Positions 2,181 through 17,674 of a stretch of 17,674 nucleotides of DNA are shown in pieces. This stretch comes from Prasinococcaceae sp. CCMP 1430 (taxonomy: Eukaryota; Plantae; Prasinodermophyta): assembly GCA_013416795.1 (NCBI GenBank), contig RQSC01000637.1, positions 18,787 to 36,460 on the forward strand. Direction: 5' to 3'. Both the position numbers and the translations under genes were made by a program. Position 1 is the stretch's first letter; each line of letters starts with the position of its first letter. Under the pieces are notes generated by a model, which searched no databases, had not been told where the DNA came from, and saw only the letters and a list, made by a program, of their open reading frames with translations.

Positions 2181-4095
2181 ATGGCGCCCAGCGCGCCGCG
2201 CCGCCGACCGCTGGGCGCGCACGCGTCCGCGACGGCGGAGCCGCGCGCGCGGGTGCCGCCGCGCCACCGCGTGTTCTACTTCCGCGAGTGGCTCGCGCGC
2301 ACGTACGGCGCGCTCGCCGGCACGGTGGTGCTCGACGTCGCCGGCGGCAAGGGGGACCTCGCGTGGCTGCTGGCCAATGCCGATGGCGCCGACGCCGTGG
2401 TCGCCGACCCGCGACTCACTGACCACTCCAAGGTAGCGCGCGCGTCGCGCCACCGCTTCATGCTCTCGCGCTCTCGCGAGCACGAGAACAAGGGGCGTGG
2501 CGAGCAATACGCATGCCGAGGCCGGGCGCCGTGTAGCGCGGCGAGCCCGGGCTGCGCTGGCGCTCGCTGCGGCTAGTGAGCGCGCGGCCATCCCGCACTC
2601 GTATCCTGCACGTGTAACCCGCGGCTGACCGACCGACACCGCTGACGCGCACCCGACGTTCGCGCGGGTCGGCGCACAACCACATCCCAGCTCGAGCGGC
2701 TCGCGCTGTGGCACGCGGAACACCCCGAGGAGGCGGCGCGTCGCGCGTCCGCCCACGCGGCAACGCGCACAGATACGCACGCAGCTGCGACTCCCTCAAA
2801 ACCCCCAACCGCTTCCACGCCCGCAGTCGCCACATCCTCGCACGATTCCGCCACACCCCGAGCCACCACGCCCACGCACGCCGCACCCACACCCTCCACG
2901 ATCACCTCTGCGCCCGCGCACGACTCCACGAAACCCACAGCCACGACCAGCACGGCAGAGCATGCCATAATTACCACAGAAAACACAAACGCGGGCCCAC
3001 GCGCGGCCACGGCCGGCGACGGCGGAGCAGCGCCGGTGAGGCGTGCCACAAACGCTGACGCCGGCGGCGGTCACCCAGCGGCAGCGCTCGCGCTGCGGCC
3101 GCCCTTCCTGCGAGCGCGCCACCTACGCACGTTCGTTGACTCCGCGCTGGTCGACGCGCTGGTGGCCGAGCGGCAGCGCCGGCAGCATCGTGGAGAGCGG
3201 CCGCAGGAGGAGGAGGAGGAAGAGGAGCAGGAGGAGGAAGATGGCGCGCAGGCGGCGGGCGACGAGCCCGCACGCACGGCTGAGCGCCGCTCGCCGGGGA
3301 TCGGCGGCTGGGCGTCCTACTGGGCGTCGGCGTCGGCGCGCGCCGAGGCGGAGCTCGCCGCGCCGATGGCGCACCACTCGGCGCCCGCCGCTGGCGCCGC
3401 GCAGGCCGCGGTGGTCGGCACGCCCGATGAGGCGCTGTCGACGCTCGAGCGCACGCGGCTGGTGGTGGGCTTCCACCCCGACCAGGCGACCGAGGCCGCC
3501 GTGGACCTCGCGCTCGCGCTGCGCGTGCCCTTCGCTGTGGTGCCCTGCTGCGTCTTCCCATCGCTCTTCCCCCACAGGCGCACGCGCGAGGGCAAGCCGG
3601 TGGCGAGCTACGACGAGTTCGTCGAGTACCTGCGGGCCAAGGTGGCGGGCGTGCGGTGAGTGCGCTGGCCGAGTGCGTGTGCGAGGATGTGCGCGTGTGC
3701 GTGCTTGTGTGCGCTCCTGGCCTTCCTGACGCAGGCGCGAGCGATACGCGCGCTCGCCACCGCCTCTTCCCACGTGCGCACCCCCCGCCCGGGCTCGCGC
3801 TCACATTGGCAGCACCGCCGAGCTGCCATTCGGCGGGCACGGCCTTCGCGCAGGGGAAGAGCCGCCGCGCTCGATCGTGCTCTACACGCTGCCCGAGGAC
3901 ATTGCTCCTGGCGTCAGCTCGCTGGAGTGCAGCCCCCGCCACGCGCTCGATGCCCCCCCCTGCCCCGCGCGTGCGCGTGAGAACGCCGTCGTGACAACTG
4001 CAGCTGTCGCGAGAGGCGCGCAGCCTGCGTGCGCCCAGCGTCGCGCGCAAGCAGAGCGCGGGGCACTGACGCGCGACATAAGGCATTTACTCTGA
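2181..4095 (+). CDS. Uncharacterised class I SAM-dependent methyltransferase-like protein. Exons 2181-2432, 2691-3655, 3813-4095
   Basis: Exon 1 has motif I VVLDVAGGKGDLAWLL. Exon 2 has LVVGFHPDQATEAAVDLALALRVPFAVVPCCVFPSLFPHR..V..YDEFVEYL. Exon 3 has TAELPFGG..IVLYT. Donors are AAG|GTAGCG (2433) and CG|GTGAG (3656). Acceptors are CCCAG (2690, with GCTGAC branch-like site at 2641) and GGCAG (3812). Phases agree at both junctions. Confidence 0.8.
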
Positions 4096-7120: not shown

Positions 7121-7554
7121 NAGTGGAGGAGAAGCAGGGCTCCGGGGAAGAGATCGACGAAAAGGAGATCGACGGGCGCAAAAGAGGTGCGTGAAAACGC
7201 GGCACGTGGTCGTACACCTGCCGGGGTCGCGTCTGCGCGCCACTGCAAGCGCCGCTCGTGCAAAACGCCGCTGACAAAAATGCAGCACATGCCATGCAGC
7301 GACCGCGTGCCGACACGCTACTCAATGTCCCTGCTGCCCGGTACAGTACGTAGCTACAGTATGGATAAGGCCGCGTTCGGGGCACACCGCCCCCATTCGA
7401 AAAGCCCCACACGACGTCAATTCGCATGCATTCGACGCGGGCTTGCACCCCGGAGGTTTTTGACCTGGTTTCCAATGCGAAACGGAGCCTTCCGCGGTCG
7501 TTTGGAGGCGCGCGGGACTGCGCGCTCGACGTGGTGGTGAGGCGTCGGGGTTCG

Positions 7555-7660
7555 TCGTGGCCTGGTGCCTCCTCGGGCTGACGGTGGTCGTGGCCTCGTG
7601 CCTCCTCGGGCTGGCGGTCAGCTTGGCTAGTACCCCCTCGGGTTGACGGTGATCGTGGCC
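7555..7660. repeat. Degenerate 33-bp tandem repeat (~3.2 units)
   Basis: Units tcgtggcctggtgcctcctcgggctgacggtgg (7555-7587), tcgtggcctcgtgcctcctcgggctggcggtca (7588-7620), a degenerate third unit (7621-7652), then tcgtggcc. Confidence 0.85.
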
Positions 7661-7857
7661 TCCACCACCTCCTCTGAACGAATGATTGAACTGTTCTCCT
7701 CCTTCGCGAATGCGAGCCACGCCGCAGCGGCGCCGGAGCGCGTGCATGGCACGCATACGCGACTGAGGCGGCGCTGCTCGTGATGCTGTACGACTGGCGC
7801 GCGCGCCCCGCCGCCCGGGCGTAGTGGTGCACGTGCAGATTATTACTTAAATTACAG

Positions 7858-7890
7858 GCTAGTCAAGCTAGCTAGCTAGATTTAGCTAGG
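7858..7890. repeat. Short self-complementary (GCTA)n microsatellite in an AT-richer patch downstream of RAD18
   Basis: gctagtcaagctagctagctagatttagctagg. Confidence 0.6.
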
Positions 7891-7981
7891 AGAGCGATCG
7901 CGGTTTGCACTATAGCTGCTGCTCGCATCGCCCCAGCCAGGCACTGGCAGGCCGCCTCACGCAGCAAGCCTTCAGTGTCGG

Positions 7982-10260
7982 TCAGGGCCGGCCCGCCTCG
8001 GGACCGTCCGCCGACGTGCGTCGATAGAATTCGTCGGCGTCCGCGTCAGCGGCTGCGCCCGCTGCGTGAAAGAGCGCATCCACGGGGTCCACGGCATCGT
8101 CGACGACGCCAGCGTCGGCAGCACCGGGCTCGGCGCCGGGCTCGGCACCTGGCTCGGCGTCCGACGGCCGCGCGTGCGCCGCAGGGGGCAGACAAAGCGC
8201 ATTTGCAGCAGCGCCGTGAACAGCCCCGCCCGAAGAGCCCGCGATCGAGTCGCGGCCCGCGATCGGGTCGCACCCCGCGCTCGCGTCACAGCCCGCGATC
8301 GAGTCGCCCGCGTCCATCGAGCCCGACGAGACGACGGCGGGCGTGGGTGGCCGAAGGGCTGCAGGCGCGCAGGACGTGAGCGCCTCCTGCGTGGGGACGC
8401 GCCACGGCATCGGGACCACAGCGCCCGTTCCGTGCTCCGGCTGCTGGTCCTGCCGCGGCTGCAGCTCCTCTCCTCGCTGACCGCCCTGCCCCTGCGGGTG
8501 CTGCTGCTGCGGCTGAGCTCCTCGATGGTGCGCCTGCGCGGCCTCCCTCTCTTTCCTCGCCTTGACCTCCGCCTGTCGTCGGAGCGCCGCGCTCCTCTTC
8601 GCGGCGATTCGCGCGCGCATCTCGTCGGACAGGCGGTTCTCCGCGCCGGCCGCGAGTGCGTCGAAGGAGCCGTCGTTGCCGCGTCCGGCGATCGCGAAAT
8701 TTGCCGCGCCGCTTGGACCTGTTGGGTCGGCACGGTGGGGAGCGGGGGCAAGGGTGCGAGGTGTCAGCGCGATGACTGGGTGCACGGAGGCGGTCTGCGC
8801 TCTTCGAGGCGCACGCGCGACGAGCTGCGTGCACGGAGCACGGCAGCGCACGCGCGCGCACGCGCGCATGCGCGTACCCGCCGTGGCCTCCCACCACTCT
8901 CTTGATGCCTGCTTTTGCTGGACGGCGCAGTAGGCCCGCGCGCGCTCCCCTTTGGCCACTTCGCGCGAGGCCTCCGATCTGAGCCTGTCAGCAGAGCGCC
9001 TCTCGCCGTCGGTCAGATTGACCTGGCCGTCGACGAGCGTGTTGTACCGCGACACGAAGGCTTTGTGACGCGCCTCCAACTCGCTTCGCTCGCCGCTCGA
9101 GTCCAAGCCGTCGCGGCTCAGGAGATCGCGCAGCTGCGTGTCGCGGGCGAAGGCGCGCGGCAATCGAGCCGGCGCGGGGGGTCAGGGCCTCCAGCATGGC
9201 GTGCGCGCGTCACGGGGGATTGCCGACCCGACGCAGAGGGCACGTTGCGCTCCGCTCGCTTCGCGTGCAGAGCTCAAGCAAGGGCTTGAGCTTTCAAGCC
9301 AATGCTCGAGCAGCGCGCACCTTTTTCATCGTGTTGTACTGCGCGTACCACACGTTGGGCATCCGCTTCGCCGGAGGCTCCTGTGTGCGGGCGCGCTTGG
9401 GACCCCCATCGCGGGCGCCGTCCTGCCCGTTCGCGACGCCGCCTTGGGCGCACGCGACGCCGGCGGCAAACTTGGCGGCAGTGGCGCGTGGCACGGGCAC
9501 CGGCCGCGCGCGCTCCGCTCGCCTCGCGTGCGCGAGCTGCTGGAGCAGCGGCCCTCGCACGCGCGCTTTATACAGCGCGGCGACTGCGCCAAGGCTGCCG
9601 ACTGGGTCGCGCGGCGGTGCGAGCGTGGCAGGGCGATCGCCAAGGGAGGCCGGCGCGTCAGCGCCGAAAGTGAAGCACTCGCGCTCACTCGCGGCTCGTC
9701 GCTCGCACGCACGCGCAGGCTCGTCTCGCCGCGCACTCACGCTCGTGCAGGTCGTTGGAGGTGCCCTCGCGGCGACACTGAGGGCAGCTGCCGCGCTCCT
9801 TCTTGGCTGCCTGCGCGCGCGGGCGTTCGGCAGCGCCCTCTCAATCAGCACGAGGCGGACAGGAGAGCGAGAGAGCCTTCGAGGGGCGTGCGCCGCGGAA
9901 CAGCGTACCTGCGCGTCCAGGTGCGAACGTATACACTGGGAGCAGAAGGCGTGGCCGCACGACAGCGCCACCGGCGCGTCGTGCACCTCCCGGCAGATGC
10001 CGCACCGCAGCAGGGCGTCGAGCTCGCGCAGCTCGGGCCAGCCTGCGCGAGGACGCAGGCAGCGCCGCCGCCGCGTGCGGGCGACCGAGATGGCAGCCAA
10101 AGCGCGCGAGAGGGGAGCGCGCCCGCGGGGCGTCAGCGAACGCGTGCTCGCGCCTTTTCAGTGCCCTGGCTGGCGTCTCGCTGGCGGCGCGCCATGGCGG
10201 CGCACACGCACCCACCGCGACGAAGTCCTCGGGCTCGTCGTCAAACTCGGCGTCGGCCAT
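7982..10260 (-). CDS. RAD18: RAD18 E3 ubiquitin ligase (RING + SAP). Exons 10260-10212, 10042-9909, 9810-9741, 9601-9321, 9133-8878, 8718-7982
   Basis: Spliced N-terminus [73 protein letters not shown] is a C3HC4 RING with the Rad18-type L-D-x-LLRC lead-in. It is followed by a helix [12 protein letters not shown] and a SAP domain [31 protein letters not shown]. All five introns are GT-AG with matching phases. Extra introns in the long last exon cannot be excluded. Confidence 0.9.
8237..8308. repeat. 18-bp x4 coding tandem repeat in the RAD18 tail
   Basis: gcccgcgatcgagtcgcg / gcccgcgatcgggtcgca / ccccgcgctcgcgtcaca / gcccgcgatcgagtcgcc. On the minus strand this reads [24 protein letters not shown]. 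Confidence 0.8.
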
Positions 10261-10372
10261 CGCGCCGGCCGAGCGGTGGAAGCCGCAAGGCTCGGCGGGC
10301 GCGCCGAGCCGCCTCCCCTCCCCTCCTCCCAGCCCCTGCGCCAGCGCGCGCGAGCGCGCGATCGCCTGCGCG
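10261..10372. promoter_or_regulatory. Probable bidirectional promoter / shared 5' region
   Basis: Only 112 bp separate the RAD18 ATG (10260, minus) from the dehydrogenase ATG (10373, plus). The interval contains a pyrimidine run cctcccctccctcctccc. No promoter motif was identified directly. Confidence 0.55.
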
Positions 10373-11703
10373 ATGGCGGCGTTCGCGCCGAGCTTCGACG
10401 CAGCCGCGCCAGCCGCGACGCGCGTCGGCTGGATCGGCACGGGCGTGATGGGCTGCTCGATGGCGATGCACCTGATCAAAGCGGGCCACCCGCTTACGGT
10501 GTACAACCGCACGGCGTCCAAGGCGCAGGTGCGCGCGCGAGCGAGCGGCGCGGCCATGCTCCGCGAGAGCAGCCGCGCGGCGCGAGCGCTGCCAGGAAGG
10601 CGCCGGCCGCTGACGTTCGCACGCGCGCGCCCTCGGCGATCCGCAGCCGCTCGTCGACGCGGGCGCGACGTACGTCCAGACCCCCGCCGAGGTCGCGGCG
10701 AACAGCGACGTCGTGTGCACAATGGTGGGCTTCCCCACGGACGTGCGCAGGGTCATCCTCGACGGCGAGACGGGTGTGGTCGGGTCCATGAAGCCCGGCG
10801 CGCTGCTGGTGGACTTCACCACCACCGAGCCGGCGCTCGCGAAGGAGGTGCGCGCGCGCGCGCGCATGCGGCGTGCACGGAGCGCGACCGCCCCGCCCGC
10901 GTCGACCACTGACGTGCTGTCGGCGCGCCGCCGCCCCTGCGCGCCAATCGCACGCAAATCACGCGCAAACGCAGATCGCGTCGGCTGCGTCCGATCGCGG
11001 GTGTGCCGCGCTGGACGCACCCGTCTCCGGCGGGGATGCTGGCGCGCGCAACGCCGCGCTCTCCATCATGTGCGGCGGCGAGCGCAGCGCCTACGAAGCC
11101 GCGCAGCCCCTGCTGGCGCGGCTGGGCACCGCGAGGCTGATGGGCGCCGCCGGGGCCGGCCAACAGACCAAGATGGGCAACCAGATCGCCATCTCCACCA
11201 CCATGGTCGGCATGTGCGAGTCCATGCTGTACGCACACAAGGCAGGGCTCGACGTGGAGGAGTTTCTCGAGGCCATCAGCGGCGGCGCAGCGGGTTCCAA
11301 GTCGCTTGACCTCTACTCGGCGAGGATAGTCAAGAGGGACATGGCGCCGGGGTTCATGGTGCGTGGGTCGACGCCGCATGCTCGCGCTCGCGGCAGCGCG
11401 CGGTAGCACGCGGGGCGTGCGCGTCCGCTGCCGTGCGATTCACCGGCGTGCTGACTCGCCGCGTCACCCGCCGGGCCCTCGCGCGCCTGCGCGCGCTGCC
11501 AGGCCGAGCATTTTGTGAAAGACCTCGGCATTGCGCTCGCCGAGTGCCAACGCATGAACCTGAGTCTGCCGGGGCTCGCACTTGCGCAGAGCCTCTACCT
11601 GGCCGTGCTCGCGCAGGGCCACGGCCGCTGCGGCACCCAGGCGCTCATCATGGCGCTCGAGAACCTGAACAACCACACGCTGCCCGAGGGAAAGGACAAG
11701 TGA
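10373..11703 (+). CDS. NAD(P)-dependent oxidoreductase, 3-hydroxyisobutyrate dehydrogenase / 6-phosphogluconate dehydrogenase (NAD_binding_2) family. Exons 10373-10528, 10647-10847, 10975-11358, 11503-11703
   Basis: Rossmann motif [26 protein letters not shown], followed by [43 protein letters not shown], the catalytic-Lys segment [11 protein letters not shown], and PGFM|[12 protein letters not shown]. Three phase-0 GTGCG..CAG introns. Confidence 0.93.
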
Positions 11704-11843
11704 GGGTCGGCAGCGAGAAACACCATGCGTGGGTACCGCCCAGCGAGAGGCGCAGCCATGCGATGCGATGCCCCGCGTGTATTATTATGAACAACATGCG
11801 GGTTTTATGCCGTCGCGCTCGCGTCGCTCACGCGCGGCGTCAA

Positions 11844-14310
11844 TCACTGGTACAGCATGCGCACTTGCATGGGCCGTCCTTGGCTGCAGGCGTGCGTGAT
11901 CGCCCCGCTCTCTATCGTCCGCTTCGCCCTGCGCCATCGGACGGCGACGTCCGACTGTCGGCGTTCGGAAGCGTGCGACGTCAGTCAGGCTCATGCCACT
12001 CTCTCTCATTCTCTCTTCTCACTTCGCTCACAATACGGACGCGCCGTTCGAATGTATTCTCTCCTCCTGCTACTTCGACGGATGCGAGCGTGCATCTCAT
12101 GTCAGAGGTGTGACCTCGCCACGCCCGGCACCGCCGGGGCGGCGCATGTCCGGGCCGGCGCCCATTGACACGAGCTCGGGCGTATCGATGACGACCGCCC
12201 TCATGGCGTCTTCCGCATTCTCGAAAGCCTCGCATGTCATGATGCGCGACCAGTTGTGTTCGACGAAAGTGTCGCTCTCGCCGAGCGGAGCAAATGCTGC
12301 GTTGGTTTCGACGCTGTGGCCGTGGCTCTCGCCACTGCTCGTCAGGCACTCCGCGGCGATCAGGGCGTCCAGCGGAGCCGCGCTGACACCGCCGTGCGCG
12401 TCGGAGAGCTCGGATTGCGCGTCGTCGACCTCCTCCGCCGCGGCCTGCAGCCGCTCTGATACTGCCCGAGACTCCGCGCGCAGTTCCCTATTCTCGCGAA
12501 CGCTCACCGGAGGGGGGCCGCTGAGGGAGTTGTATTCTGCGCTCTCATCCCAGGCGTGCCCTTTCGCCACCGTGGCCTCTTGCTGCGGCTCGCACGAAGC
12601 TGCGGCGTCGAGATCATCGGCGGCGTCCGCAGCATCGCCTGCGCCCGACGAGCCCGACGAATCTGCCAGAGAGAGACCCAGCACCCTGACAGCCTCCAAC
12701 AGCGACTCCCTCTGGCCGTCCTGAGCGCCTGCACTCCGCGCGCACGCCTCTTCCTTCTCCTCGTCCTCCTTCTTTTCCTGCTGTTGCTGCTGCTGCTGCT
12801 GCAGAGCGTCGACCTGGCACTGCGCCTTCCACAGCCGACCACGCACGTCTCCTGCCTCGCGCCGCGCGGCGGCAGCGCGCTCCTTCGCTCGCACTGCGGC
12901 GTGCGTGGCAGCGCCGAGTTCGCGCTCGAGCGTAGTCACGCGCGCTTGCAGGGCTTCTGCGCGCTTCTCCAAGCTGCGGTCCGACTCGGCGCCAGTTGCC
13001 GGATGCACGCGAAGCCTCGGGGAAGGCATCCGCTTGTTGTCCTGCCCGGGAGGCGGTGACGAGCTACTACGATTGTAGACGTGCGTGACGTCGGACAGAG
13101 CCCCGTCCTCGTCGTCCGAGCTTGCGTCGTCGGCAACGCTCGCGGCGACGCCCTCGCAATCTCCTCGGTGTGGCTCGGCGATGCCAGTGCGCCCGCTGCC
13201 GGCGAGCAGGCGCTTTTTTGGCGCATTTTTGCCTTGCTCCCGATGCGGCGACTCCTCGTGATCCTCTTCGCAGCGCTCGTCGTCGGCAAAGGCCGGCGCA
13301 CCAGCCTCAGTGCTGGGACCCGAAGATGGTGCCAGCTCGTCGTCGGCGAAGGCGAAGTACGCGATCGAGTGGCGGGGAGTTTCGGGACAGCCGCTGTGCG
13401 CCCAAGAGCCGTCGTCGTCGACGTCGCTGTCGCTCTCGTGGGCGAAGACGCCTCCCTCGCCCAAGATGTCGCAGCTTATGGCGCCTTCTTCGTATTCTTC
13501 CTGCCGCTGCCCGTGCTCGTCGTACAGAACGGAGACGGCGCTGCCGCTGGCGGTGCTGGGGCCTGCCGCTGTTGCTGAGGGCGACGAGGGCTCGCGCGCG
13601 TCGTCATCGCGGGCACGGCACGCCGCGCGCCGCGCGGTGCCGTGCGCCTCGACGACAAGCCGCGCATGCTCCTGCGCGCCGGCGCTGCCGCCCCCGGCCC
13701 CGCTGCCGCGCAGAAACGTCAGCGCGCGGGTGCGTGCTGCCCCCTCCGCGTCCGCCTCCAACGACTCCGGCGAGTCGGAGTCGCCGCTCGTGGACAGACG
13801 ACCATCGCCACTGAGCCTGAGCTTCAGACCTTTGGTGGCATCGCCATCCCCGGTCTGCCTCGCGGTCTGCCTCTCGGTGCTGCGCTTGCCGCGGCGCGGC
13901 AGCAGCGGCGCGACCACCAGCGCGGCGAGCGCGGCGGCGGCGCCGATCGCCGCGACTGCGAGCGCGGGCAGCAGCGCCACCGGCGGCGCGGGACGCGCGC
14001 TCTTCGCTGGCGAGGACGTCTCCTCGACGCTGACGAGGCACCTGCTCGTGACCGCCGCGGCGGCGTGGAGCTTCGGGTCGACGGCAGCGACAGCGGGGGT
14101 GGCGCCGCCTCCGACGAGTCCTTCGTGCATGGCGCGGGCGCCCCCCAGCGGCGACGCCCCGGGCGGCGGCGTCCGCAGCTGCGACTCATGCACTTTCGCG
14201 GCCGCCCCGCTGCCTTCTTCGCCGTCCGAGTTCCGCCCCCGCTCCGCCATCCAGCGCCCGCGCCCGCGGCGCTGCGGCGGCGCCCCCTCCTCCATCGCCG
14301 GCGCTCGCAT
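11844..14310 (-). CDS. Hypothetical protein with one predicted transmembrane helix, acidic low-complexity linkers and a coiled coil. Main exon ~14310-12115, possible last exon 11954-11844
   Basis: A ~2.2-kb stop-free frame with protein-like D/E/A/S composition. It has a hydrophobic run LLPALAVAAIGAAAALAALVVAPLL (~13976-13898) and a heptad region LEKRAEALQARVTTLERELG..QCQVDALQQQQQQQQ. The candidate last exon SDVAVRWRRAKRTIESGAITHACSQGRPMQVRMLYQ* follows CTGAC..ACAG and is in phase with a weak GTCACA donor at 12114. Otherwise the ORF stops at 12097. The start codon is uncertain (14310, 14295 or 14250). Confidence 0.6.
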
Positions 14311-14580
14311 CGATCGCCGCCAGCCGCGCCGCGGACGCGTGCCCACGTGTGTGTGCGCGTACGCACGCGTCGCCGTTCGAATCCGCGCGCCCGCCGCTCG
14401 CAACCCAACGGCGCCGGATCGGAGCGCGCGCCCACGCGGCTGTGGCGCTGCGCCCTCCCCCTTCCCCCCACACCACCACCACCCCACCGCCGCCTCACCC
14501 CACCGCGCCGGCGCCGCAGGGGCGAGAGCCCGCGCACCTGCTCCAGCCCGCGGCTGCTATCTTGGCAGGCTGGCTGGCGC

Positions 14581-14650
14581 GGTGTGGTGTGTGTGTGTGT
14601 GTGTGTGTGGTGAGTGAGTGGGTGAGTGAGTGGCGTGTGTGTGTGTGTGA
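14581..14650. repeat. (GT)n/(GAGT)n microsatellite
   Basis: ggtgtggtgtgtgtgtgtgtgtgtgtgtggtgagtgagtgggtgagtgagtggcgtgtgtgtgtgtgtga. Confidence 0.9.
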
Positions 14651-14753
14651 TGGTGTTGGGAGGGGCTGTTGACGCGCGCGCGCATCGAAACGAACGCGCC
14701 GCGCGCATTAAAGCGTTTCAAACGTTCTTTGATTTGTTACAGCTGAAATCAAA

Positions 14754-14765
14754 TGGTATCAGAGC
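14754..14765 (+). mobile_element. tRNA-iMet primer-binding-site-like 12-mer (possible LTR retroelement relic)
   Basis: Exact TGGTATCAGAGC, preceded by CA-aa as at an LTR/PBS boundary. No second LTR and no gag/pol ORF were found. Confidence 0.3.
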
Positions 14766-14802
14766 GCGCGCGCAGCCGCATCCGAACGCAAGGCATGCAC
14801 GG

Positions 14803-14886
14803 GTCCGAACCCGAACCCTCATCACATGATTACAGTAGACTACTAGACTACTGTAGTGGGACTACAGTAGTCACTAGGGTTCGGAC
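14803..14886. repeat. Nested inverted repeat (foldback)
   Basis: Outer arms gtccgaaccc (14803-14812) and gggttcggac (14877-14886). Inner perfect 12-bp stem gactactgtagt-ggg-actacagtagtc (14846-14872). Confidence 0.85.
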
Positions 14887-15243
14887 ATCCTTTCTTTTGA
14901 GACGGGGACCCCCGTGGTGGTGGTGCGTGAAGTCTTTTGTGTGGGGGGTGTACAGAATGGCGTCAGAATCAAAATCAAACGAGGGGCGTTTTGAATGCAA
15001 TTTGACGTGCGGTGTGAGGGGGTGATGGGAATTGGAGTTCAAAAAATTCGGCGCGGGTGTTGGCAGCGCCCGGGGACTCGGGCTGTAGCGACGGCGCTGC
15101 GGCGGCGGGACCACAGCGGCGCCCGCGGGCGCCGGCGAGGGCGGCGCAAGGTACCGTGGCGGGGGGGCCGAGGAGAGGAGGTGCGGCCCTCTGGCGCGGC
15201 CCTCTGGCGCGGAGCGCCGCGCCGCTCCGCTCCGCGCCGCGGA

Positions 15244-15550
15244 GAAATGCTGGGCCGCGCCGGTCTCCTCGATATAGCCCATGCCGCCGTGGACCTGGAC
15301 GCCCAGGCTGGCGACTTCGTTGCCGAGATCGGTGCCGTGCGCCTTGGCGAGCGGGGTGAGCAGCTCGACACGCTTCTCCGCCTCGGCATCGCCGGCACGG
15401 GCGCGATCGAGCTGGCCGAAAGCGTAATAGACCAAAGCCCGTGCCGCCTGGGTCTGCGCCTTCATCCGCAGCAGCATGCGGCGGACATCGGGATGCTCGA
15501 CGATCGCGACCTGTTCGCCGCCGCGATAGCCCTGCACGCGCTCGCGGGCG
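15244..15550 (-). pseudogene. Internal fragment (~100 aa) of a bacterial-type acyl-CoA dehydrogenase gene
   Basis: ARERVQGYRGGEQVAIVEHPDVRRMLLRMKAQTQAARALVYYAFGQLDRARAGDAEAEKRVELLTPLAKAHGTDLGNEVASLGVQVHGGMGYIEETGAAQHF. The HPDVRRMLL, LLTPxAK and QVHGGMGYIEETGAAQ motifs mark the C-terminal helical domain of the long bacterial acyl-CoA dehydrogenase subfamily. Similarity stops abruptly at both ends, with no start codon, no RDARI..YEGTNGIQ segment and no introns. Confidence 0.9.
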
Positions 15551-16869
15551 CCTGGGTGCCGCGCGAGCCGGCGGGGGTTGCCGCCGCCGTTGCCGAGGAG
15601 TTCATCGCAAGGGTCGGAGGAGCGCTGGCGGAGTCCTCCCGCGCGGACTTAACGGCGGCCGGCAATGCGCGCGCGGCGCTCCCGCGCGCCGCCGCGCGCG
15701 GGCGCACGTGCGACGACCAGGAGCGGTCGCGCATACGGCGCTCGCTTCACATCGAGAAGACCCCACTCGAGGTCGAGAGGTGCCTGTCGTCGCTCAACGG
15801 CACTCGTTTCAAAGCGATGGATCGGTGCGCGATCTCCTTCAAAACTCGGTGCCCCGACCCGGACTGGGTGGACGCGCTCCGGCGCACGCCGCCAGAGGGG
15901 CCCGAGCGACCGCGAGCTGGCGGCGGCGCGCCGCGCGCGCGGCGGCTGATGGGCGCTGCGGGTGCCACGGCCAGGCCGCCGGTGGTGGTGGTGCATGTGG
16001 GATGCAACAAGGGCTACGAGGCGGTCGACACGCTGCGCGCAACGACATCCGATCCGGTCTTTGACAGGGCCGCCTGGCTCAAGGCGTTGTCGGGCTCCGA
16101 TACGGCGACCGGGGTCATGAGGGGCGCATGCGGCCAACACCAAGTCCCCTTGCAGGCGAAGCTCTCGAGCGCAGACGTCGCGCGCGCGCCGCTCGTGGAT
16201 GCCGAGGTGCACTGCATCGAACCCATGCCCGTGACCTTCGAGGCGCTCGTGAAGGCTTCGGAGAGCCTCGGCTATGACAAGCGGGGGCTGCGCGTTTCCA
16301 ACGTCGCCATCGCGGATGAGTCAGGCACCGTGAAGTTTCCCGCGCCCGTCGCTGGCGCCAGTGCACAGAGTGTGCTCGGGTTGGAGACGGTCACCGCGGG
16401 CACATGCGAGCAAGTCGTCGCTGCGATGAATGAGGAAGCCGGCGCCGACAAGTTGGAGTGCAGAGATGTGAAGATGCGCACCCTCGATGAGTACGTGGAC
16501 AAAGAGGTCGATAAGGGCCCGATCATCGACATGCTGGTCGTCGACACCGAGGGCTTTGACCCGCTGGTGTTGCGTGGCGCAAAGTCCACGCTCAGCCGTG
16601 TGCGCTACCTCGAATTCGAGTACCACGGCATCGGCCCGTGGGCTGAGACGAAGCTGGCCGACGTGATCGGTTCTCTTGACGACGCGGGCTTCGACTGCTA
16701 CTGGGCGGGGCGAAAGAAGCTGTGGCGGATCACAGGGTGCTTTGATCCACGATATTACGAGTTCCATTTCTGGAGCAACATAGCATGCGTGCACCGCTCG
16801 CAGCGCGGCTGGCACGCCGTCATGGAGGCCGAGGCGAACGAGACGCTCTCGGTGTACGGAGACGCGTAA
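15247..16869 (+). CDS. FkbM-family (Methyltransf_21) SAM-dependent methyltransferase. 5' end uncertain; native sequence starts ~15551
   Basis: VVVHVGCNKGY, VHCIEPMPVTF, VSNVAI, VKMRTLDEYV, IDMLVVDTEGFDPLVLRGA..LSRVRYLEFEYH, LDDAGFDCYWAG..LWRITGC, WSNIACVH. TAA at 16867-16869. The frame is open back through the bacterial fragment. ATG 15247 is the first ATG in the GC-rich part (the ORF track extends the frame to 14995). Confidence 0.85.
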   Translation: MLGRAGLLDIAHAAVDLDAQAGDFVAEIGAVRLGERGEQLDTLLRLGIAGTGAIELAESVIDQSPCRLGLRLHPQQHAADIGMLDDRDLFAAAIALHALAGAWVPREPAGVAAAVAEEFIARVGGALAESSRADLTAAGNARAALPRAAARGRTCDDQERSRIRRSLHIEKTPLEVERCLSSLNGTRFKAMDRCAISFKTRCPDPDWVDALRRTPPEGPERPRAGGGAPRARRLMGAAGATARPPVVVVHVGCNKGYEAVDTLRATTSDPVFDRAAWLKALSGSDTATGVMRGACGQHQVPLQAKLSSADVARAPLVDAEVHCIEPMPVTFEALVKASESLGYDKRGLRVSNVAIADESGTVKFPAPVAGASAQSVLGLETVTAGTCEQVVAAMNEEAGADKLECRDVKMRTLDEYVDKEVDKGPIIDMLVVDTEGFDPLVLRGAKSTLSRVRYLEFEYHGIGPWAETKLADVIGSLDDAGFDCYWAGRKKLWRITGCFDPRYYEFHFWSNIACVHRSQRGWHAVMEAEANETLSVYGDA

Positions 16870-17130
16870 ACGCCGCCCCCTCGCTCGGCGAATCGCGAGC
16901 ATCCGGTCCTCGAGTAATCGGATGGATGATGTTCCGCAAGGCGCGTAGTGTGCATTTAAAAAACGAAAATGAGATCCGCCGGGGAGCTATGCATGTGATC
17001 GCCATCGCTCGTGCTTCGCTCACGCGCACGCAGCCTCCGCCGGCGACTCTGTCATTTCATATTCGTTGTAGGTGCGGCCCGTCGACTCCTCTCTCTCGCT
17101 CTCTCTCCCTCTCCAGCCCCCCGTTCCCCT

Positions 17131-17650
17131 CTAAGGGTGCGCGCCGGGGGCGTCGTGCTGGCGCAGCAGCTCCAGGGCGTGCTCGTGGCCGTGAAGATCG
17201 GCCACGTCTTGCGCCGTACGGCCGTCTTGGGTGCGCGCAGACGTGTTGGCGCCCGCCTCGAGCAGCAGCCTCAGGCAGTCGGGGCGATCTTGCATAGCAG
17301 CGAAATGCAGGGGAGTGTAATCGCGCTCGTCCGCTTTCTCCTTGTCTGCGCCTGCTTCGAGCAGCAGCTGGACGCAGTCGGCATGGCCTCGCATGGTAGC
17401 GAGGTGCAGCGCAGTCCAGCCCTTTGGTCTCGCGTGGCCCGTGTCAGCGCGAATGTCCGCATCGGGCATTATTCCCGCCATCAACATCCTATCTCGGACC
17501 CAGCGGAGCTCCCTCAGCGCCGCGTCGCGCTCCTCGCGCGCCTCCCGCACGCGCTCCGCGTTGGTGCCCAGCGCCTGCGAGGCGAGCAGCAGCGCCTGGC
17601 GCGCAGTCTCCGCCGACGCCTCGCTCACTGCGGCGCCCCGAAGACCGTAC
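17131..17650 (-). CDS. Last exon of an ankyrin-repeat protein (gene continues beyond the window)
   Basis: GWTALHLATMRGHADCVQLLLEAGAD, DYTPLHFAAMQDRPDCLRLLLEAGAN and GRTAQDVADLHGHEHALELL are two full ankyrin repeats plus a capping one. A GCGCAG acceptor ends at 17651. TAG at 17133-17131. Confidence 0.9.
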
Positions 17651-17674
17651 CTGCGCACACGTAGGGCGCGCGTT

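Follow-up and report, generated by a model that had tools for sequence, protein, structure and literature searches.

A Sphingomonas acyl-CoA dehydrogenase gene fragment that replaces the start of an algal methyltransferase gene is probably an assembly artefact

Short runs of bacterial DNA inside eukaryotic contigs have their closest described counterparts in the contaminant-derived chimeric contigs and gap-closure errors of short-read assemblies. These carry near-identical bacterial sequence that shows no decay, they have short exact overlaps at their junctions, they form at sites of poor host coverage, and they escape contig-level decontamination. The first tardigrade genome, for which a claim of 'massive HGT' was disputed, is reportedly an example. 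Common short-read assemblers have a smallest default k of 21, and Sphingomonas is a common reagent contaminant. Other relevant counterparts are genuine captures of DNA at double-strand breaks, such as filler DNA of the NUMT or NUPT type and bacterial-to-eukaryote lateral transfers, which leave a short foreign fragment with junction microhomology, untemplated junction bases and a small deletion of the target.

The window considered here is a 17,674-nucleotide stretch of DNA in which a fragment of a bacterial acyl-CoA dehydrogenase gene had been noticed between algal sequences. The features of this locus are listed below in order of position.

14995 to 15242, plus strand: host sequence that precedes the methyltransferase gene and is collinear with metagenome relatives in the haplotype alignment.
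15231 to 15243, left junction: ragged, with identity to the host up to 15242 and the bacterial run starting at 15244.
15243 to 15528, replaced segment: 286 bp that occupy the site of about 134 native bp (scaffold L081, positions 8254 to 8387, 87% G+C), from the comparison with environmental haplotypes.
15244 to 15549, minus strand: 306-bp slice of a Sphingomonas acyl-CoA dehydrogenase gene (DmdC/AidB-like, 563 amino acids), residues 312 to 413, part of the C-terminal domain only; 97.1% nucleotide and 100% amino acid identity to S. kyeonggiensis S00224 (L002, positions 3001 to 3306).
15529 to 15549, right junction: 21-bp stretch identical in the native alga and the bacterial gene (all five haplotypes; L001, L002, L087).
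15550 to 16869, plus strand: the rest of the host FkbM-family methyltransferase gene (Methyltransf_21), intact, with 97 to 98% protein identity to environmental relatives (Pfam and protein searches).

The minus strand of positions 15244 to 15552 is an open frame of 103 codons that reads G-ARERVQG...AAQHF, and the translations of the two remaining frames show no likeness to an acyl-CoA dehydrogenase. A Pfam search matches the slice to Acyl-CoA_dh_1 (PF00441, E=1.8e-14), which is the C-terminal helical domain, but the match is partial and covers profile positions 44 to 124 of 150. There are solely sub-threshold matches to assorted acyl-CoA dehydrogenase models in an NCBIfam search. In the 563-amino-acid protein of S00224, residue 413 is followed by RDARITPIYEGT. 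The original prediction had described an in-frame internal slice that is cut at both ends and had anticipated how the protein would continue after AAQHF, and both descriptions are borne out.

There are 532 relatives of the slice in a scan that took one genome per bacterial species, and the best 80 of these are almost exclusively from Sphingomonas or Sphingomonadaceae, in agreement with an early impression that the sequence was Sphingomonad-like. Protein identity is 100% in the top two relatives, which are S00224 and a freshwater-type MAG. At the DNA level, the slice is 97.1% identical over 306 bp to S00224 (bacterial best matches at high nucleotide identity had been expected), 96.4% to a JGI metagenome contig and 96.1% to a Logan contig. 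The source names of the relatives are 3-(methylthio)propanoyl-CoA dehydrogenase or AidB-like acyl-CoA dehydrogenase. Judged by sequence, we regard the bacterial origin of the slice as proven.

Set against the Sphingomonas DmdC/AidB-like enzymes of 563 amino acids, to whose residues 312 to 413 its protein is 100% identical, the slice amounts to 18% of the protein and lacks the N-terminal, middle and extra C-terminal domains. Therefore, it cannot be an enzyme. The three-domain acyl-CoA dehydrogenase architecture (N-terminal helical, middle beta-barrel, C-terminal helical) is absent as one gene from the window, where a tblastn search with the full 563-amino-acid protein matched residues 312 to 417 and nothing else. 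Likewise, no further bacterial-like or acyl-CoA dehydrogenase-like pieces were found in the window by blastn or tblastn. The patch has a G+C content of 67.8%, compared with 87% for the displaced native segment and 70.3% for the window as a whole. Separately, there is a library protein (P0017, 2180 amino acids) in which 16 separate stretches match the 103-amino-acid slice at about 32% identity, which is oddly repetitive for this domain.

Every difference between the slice and three of its bacterial matches is synonymous (nine for S00224, 12 for the Logan contig, 19 for the MAG). Among the possible single-base changes in the slice, 25% are synonymous, and the chance of drawing nine out of nine under neutrality is P=4e-6. 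This indicates that the differences arose in bacteria, without decay in the alga, and the neutral substitution or amelioration that would be looked for after a transfer is not seen. From this pattern, the differences are ordinary between-strain variation under selection in bacteria, and the slice has spent essentially zero time evolving as non-coding eukaryotic DNA. Thus far, the earlier description of the fragment as undecayed and as lying between eukaryotic flanks is upheld.

These data bear on the idea that the slice belongs to an acyl-CoA dehydrogenase of the alga itself, as an exon or a pseudogene, or else is an old transferred gene. An AG located just upstream of the first minus-strand codon fits this idea. 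However, a slice that matches a living bacterium at 97% of nucleotides and differs from it only synonymously cannot be old, syntenic relatives (described below) have no such piece, and the tblastn search finds in the window none of the further exons that the original prediction had named as possible counter-evidence. A host exon, with or without more acyl-CoA dehydrogenase exons, was rejected on these grounds, and we consider this reading practically out of the question.

The exact donor was sought with a 45-nucleotide stretch that includes three synonymous variants specific to the window, and there was no match. Three more near-identical bacterial loci were ruled out as the donor, being just 94 to 96% identical. 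Because no exact donor is present in any collection searched, no sequencing run can be linked to the contaminant. The closest known relatives of the donor are soil or freshwater Sphingomonas and not a marine associate.

The plus-strand gene that flanks the patch encodes a methyltransferase of the FkbM family (PF05050 by Pfam search), and a protein search recovers its relatives at 97 to 98% identity in Tara and ENA metagenomes and in Logan assemblies. One Tara relative, scaffold L081, is collinear with window positions 7404 to 17624 at 92 to 97% nucleotide identity, and there are two exceptions, namely the patch and a site near 10370. The native segment with both of its boundaries is common to five of five independent marine metagenome haplotypes (L081, L082, L083, L085 and L086), which are relatives at 92 to 97% identity and not the same strain, and the native N-terminus is kept in at least 12 protein variants from Tara, ENA and Logan assemblies. 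No independent haplotype carries the patch at this site. It is found in the window alone, and is absent from all five DNA haplotypes and from every one of the protein variants. Since positions 15243 to 15528 take the place of 134 bp in L081, between flanks that remain collinear, this is a replacement and not an insertion.

The native segment encodes the start of the methyltransferase, which consists of a Met, a short tail with six arginines and then a hydrophobic stretch with a Kyte-Doolittle value of 2.02 over 19 residues. This arrangement suggests that the native N-terminus is a type II signal anchor. Exactly this start and anchor part is missing from the window, and the methyltransferase is otherwise intact. 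There is a public 306-amino-acid model of the protein (P0271, EukProt), the sole same-strain entry, which is 100% identical to the window and starts at 15949, downstream of the right junction. The model is recorded without a contig, and the collections searched yielded no genomic assembly of the same strain.

Several other observations concern the same gene and its surroundings. The order of genes around the methyltransferase is conserved between the scaffolds L081 to L086 and window positions 12097 to 17658, with a long low-complexity protein gene upstream, and an ankyrin-repeat gene and then a Methyltransf_22 gene downstream. Position ~8290 of L081 has GGG, compared with the ATG start codon of the methyltransferase in the other four haplotypes, and this reflects either an error in sequencing or a variant whose translation begins elsewhere. 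At 90% identity or above, the methyltransferase cluster comprises 23 members, which indicates that the alga or its close kin are common and diverse in marine metagenomes.

A plus-strand ORF of 624 codons (14995 to 16869) crosses the patch antisense and is in frame with the methyltransferase. The antisense strand of the whole bacterial gene is open as well (586 codons in L002), as GC-rich codon usage would lead one to expect, and the chance of falling in frame is one in three. In addition, the N-terminal part read from the window reaches a Kyte-Doolittle maximum of 1.27, compared with 2.02 for the native protein, and the hydrophobic anchor is absent. The antisense frame was therefore rejected as a meaningful new N-terminus. 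The chimeric part of the 624-amino-acid ORF has no match among 5.8 billion proteins. An exact look-up of 12 window ORFs in the 5.8-billion-sequence collection found 0 of 12 present. Four of the 12 were additional start variants of the plus-strand methyltransferase ORF, and three of these four cross the right junction.

The two junctions differ in character. On the right, the bases that flank the 21-bp stretch differ between the alga and the bacterium on both sides, which limits the longest shared match to exactly 21 bp. The same 21-mer is invariant in five of five environmental haplotypes and is native to the host. On the left, there is only a 7-bp in-register match (15231 to 15237), and one orphan base, an A at 15243, a position that is G in the host relatives as well as in the bacterium. 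Neither junction shows an N or a target-site duplication, as had been reported before, and single Ns are located elsewhere, at 820 and 7121. A 42-nucleotide pattern for the right junction has no match among JGI metagenome contigs, and no independent copy of either junction was found in the JGI metagenome contigs or the protein collection.

How readily an alga and a Sphingomonas might share such a stretch was estimated from a k-mer comparison of the window minus the patch with about 478 kb of Sphingomonas loci. The number of shared k-mers drops about threefold with each added base. When extrapolated from k=16 to a pair of complete genomes, one of about 25 Mb and one of about 4.5 Mb, the trend predicts shared 21-mers on the order of thousands, and among matches that reach 21 bp, about two in three are expected to stop at that length. 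The right junction lies in an exact match of host and contaminant that has the k-mer length of an assembler and is mismatched on either side, as looked for in a chimera. A de Bruijn graph with k=21 requires an overlap of this length to join two unrelated sequences.

The locus also combines a displaced segment that is hard to sequence with traces of scaffolding or gap closure, in the form of the 87% G+C of the native segment, the Ns and a segment missing near 10370. The single Ns at 820 and 7121 are isolated within otherwise normal sequence, and are typical of what scaffolders or gap closers leave when joining short-read contigs. For this reason, the window probably derives from a scaffolded short-read product and not a pure long-read one. 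At 10368 to 10372, the window lacks 280 bp with 81% G+C that are present in L081 (3009 to 3288), the sole metagenome relative that covers the site. This segment supplies an ATG and an Ala/Arg-rich extension or presequence that continues in frame into the first exon of a 3-hydroxyisobutyrate-dehydrogenase-like gene (NAD_binding_11). The difference is either a second GC-rich gene start lost from the assembly or a natural indel between GCGCGC runs.

The published G+C content of Prasinoderma coloniale is 69.8%, with which the 70.3% of the window and its marine relatives agree. The genome paper of this species describes a PacBio/NextDenovo assembly of an axenic clone, from which contamination was removed at the contig level by comparing contigs with nr. 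The reporting summary for that genome lists SPAdes 3.10.1, SSPACE 3.0, GapCloser 1.12 and MeDuSa among the software. If the host is this species, these tools and the contig-level screen would speak for an artefact. If the window comes from the long-read assembly of this species, a short-read artefact would be harder to argue. Literature searches on Prasinoderma yielded no specific report of Sphingomonas or of contamination.

A chimera is favoured because 134 bp of native sequence are replaced, the overlap coincides exactly with 21 bp, the displaced segment has 87% G+C and there are single-N gaps. The original prediction had offered a choice between a young insertion and an assembly chimera. 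Of these, the second is the more likely on the same evidence. The further claim that the fragment is truly embedded in algal nuclear DNA is probably wrong, given that all haplotypes have the native segment and given the same 21-bp coincidence, G+C content and gaps. We consider it likely, with good confidence, that the patch is an assembly artefact in which contaminant reads entered the algal path at the shared 21-mer where the native GC-rich part was uncovered, and the gap was then closed.

The events might have proceeded as follows. A Sphingomonas of the S. kyeonggiensis group would have contaminated the sequencing data with a small number of reads, and the first 134 bp of the native methyltransferase gene, with 87% G+C, would have had poor or zero short-read coverage. 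If the assembler used a de Bruijn graph at k=21, the path through the alga would then reach a dead end at the shared 21-mer, with the bacterial path as the sole exit. The contig would extend some 285 bp into the bacterial gene, which is roughly one library fragment, and then end. Scaffolding and gap closing might finally abut this end to the next algal contig, which would produce the ragged left junction and its orphan base. The left junction has no long overlap, and therefore a graph crossing alone fails to account for both ends and a gap-closing step must be assumed. We infer the coverage drop-out, the identity of the assembler and the order of these events.

Another possibility is that the chimera formed before assembly, when template switching or ligation during library preparation joined molecules at the 21-bp identity and the assembler followed the product faithfully. 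This would give the same junction features, and the patch is about one library fragment long. However, a single chimeric molecule gives one junction, yet both ends of the patch return to collinear host sequence. The molecule must also outcompete the correct reads, and so a drop-out in coverage would still be needed. We judge this origin to be quite improbable.

The junctions also permit a biological reading, wherein the GC-rich 5' end of the methyltransferase gene broke in the cultured lineage and was very recently repaired through the 21-bp identity with stray Sphingomonas DNA. The other join would have been left ragged, 134 bp deleted, the start and membrane anchor lost, and the result fixed by a single-cell bottleneck. 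Break repair, too, could leave microhomology on one side and an untemplated base on the other, as seen here, and the junctions contain no N. Moreover, if the host is P. coloniale, the culture was first grown with bacteria and then cloned from single cells. Against this, an identity of 21 bp exceeds what is usual in microhomology-mediated repair and has the length of a standard assembler k-mer, and the closest donors are Sphingomonas from soil or freshwater, of the contaminant type and not a marine associate. The environmental haplotypes are all without the patch, and the searches of JGI metagenome contigs and the protein collection gave no independent copy of a junction. Finally, the patch occupies the hardest site to sequence in a window with N-gaps and another missing 5' segment, which points to a technical cause. 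A real capture, both in its origin by break repair and in the later loss and fixation, is therefore regarded as unlikely.

If the patch is an assembly artefact, the value of the finding lies in curation, in that a public algal assembly holds a bacterial patch of about 300 bp within an otherwise correct contig. Such patches evade contig-level decontamination, destroy true gene starts and may seed false claims of horizontal gene transfer. Here, the methyltransferase has lost its start codon and membrane anchor, and the public model is truncated to 306 amino acids. The signature can be screened for genome-wide, as an exact overlap of length k together with a replaced, extremely GC-rich segment that relatives retain. 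If the patch is real, it is a rare and directly observed capture of bacterial DNA by an alga. Overall, the biological interest of the patch is low, and it is useful as a curation flag.

Like genuine captures at double-strand breaks, the patch is a short foreign fragment with microhomology at a junction, an untemplated junction base and a small deletion of the target. It differs from them in the overlap of exactly 21 bp, in a donor that is a typical contaminant, in its absence from every related haplotype, and in its site, a segment of 87% G+C within an assembly that lacks other 5' ends too. With contaminant-derived chimeric contigs and gap-closure errors, the patch shares the near-identity to a bacterium, the lack of decay, the short exact overlap, the probably poor host coverage and the escape from contig-level decontamination. 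It departs from them in being merely about 300 bp long with collinear host sequence on both sides, and is therefore invisible to screens of whole contigs.
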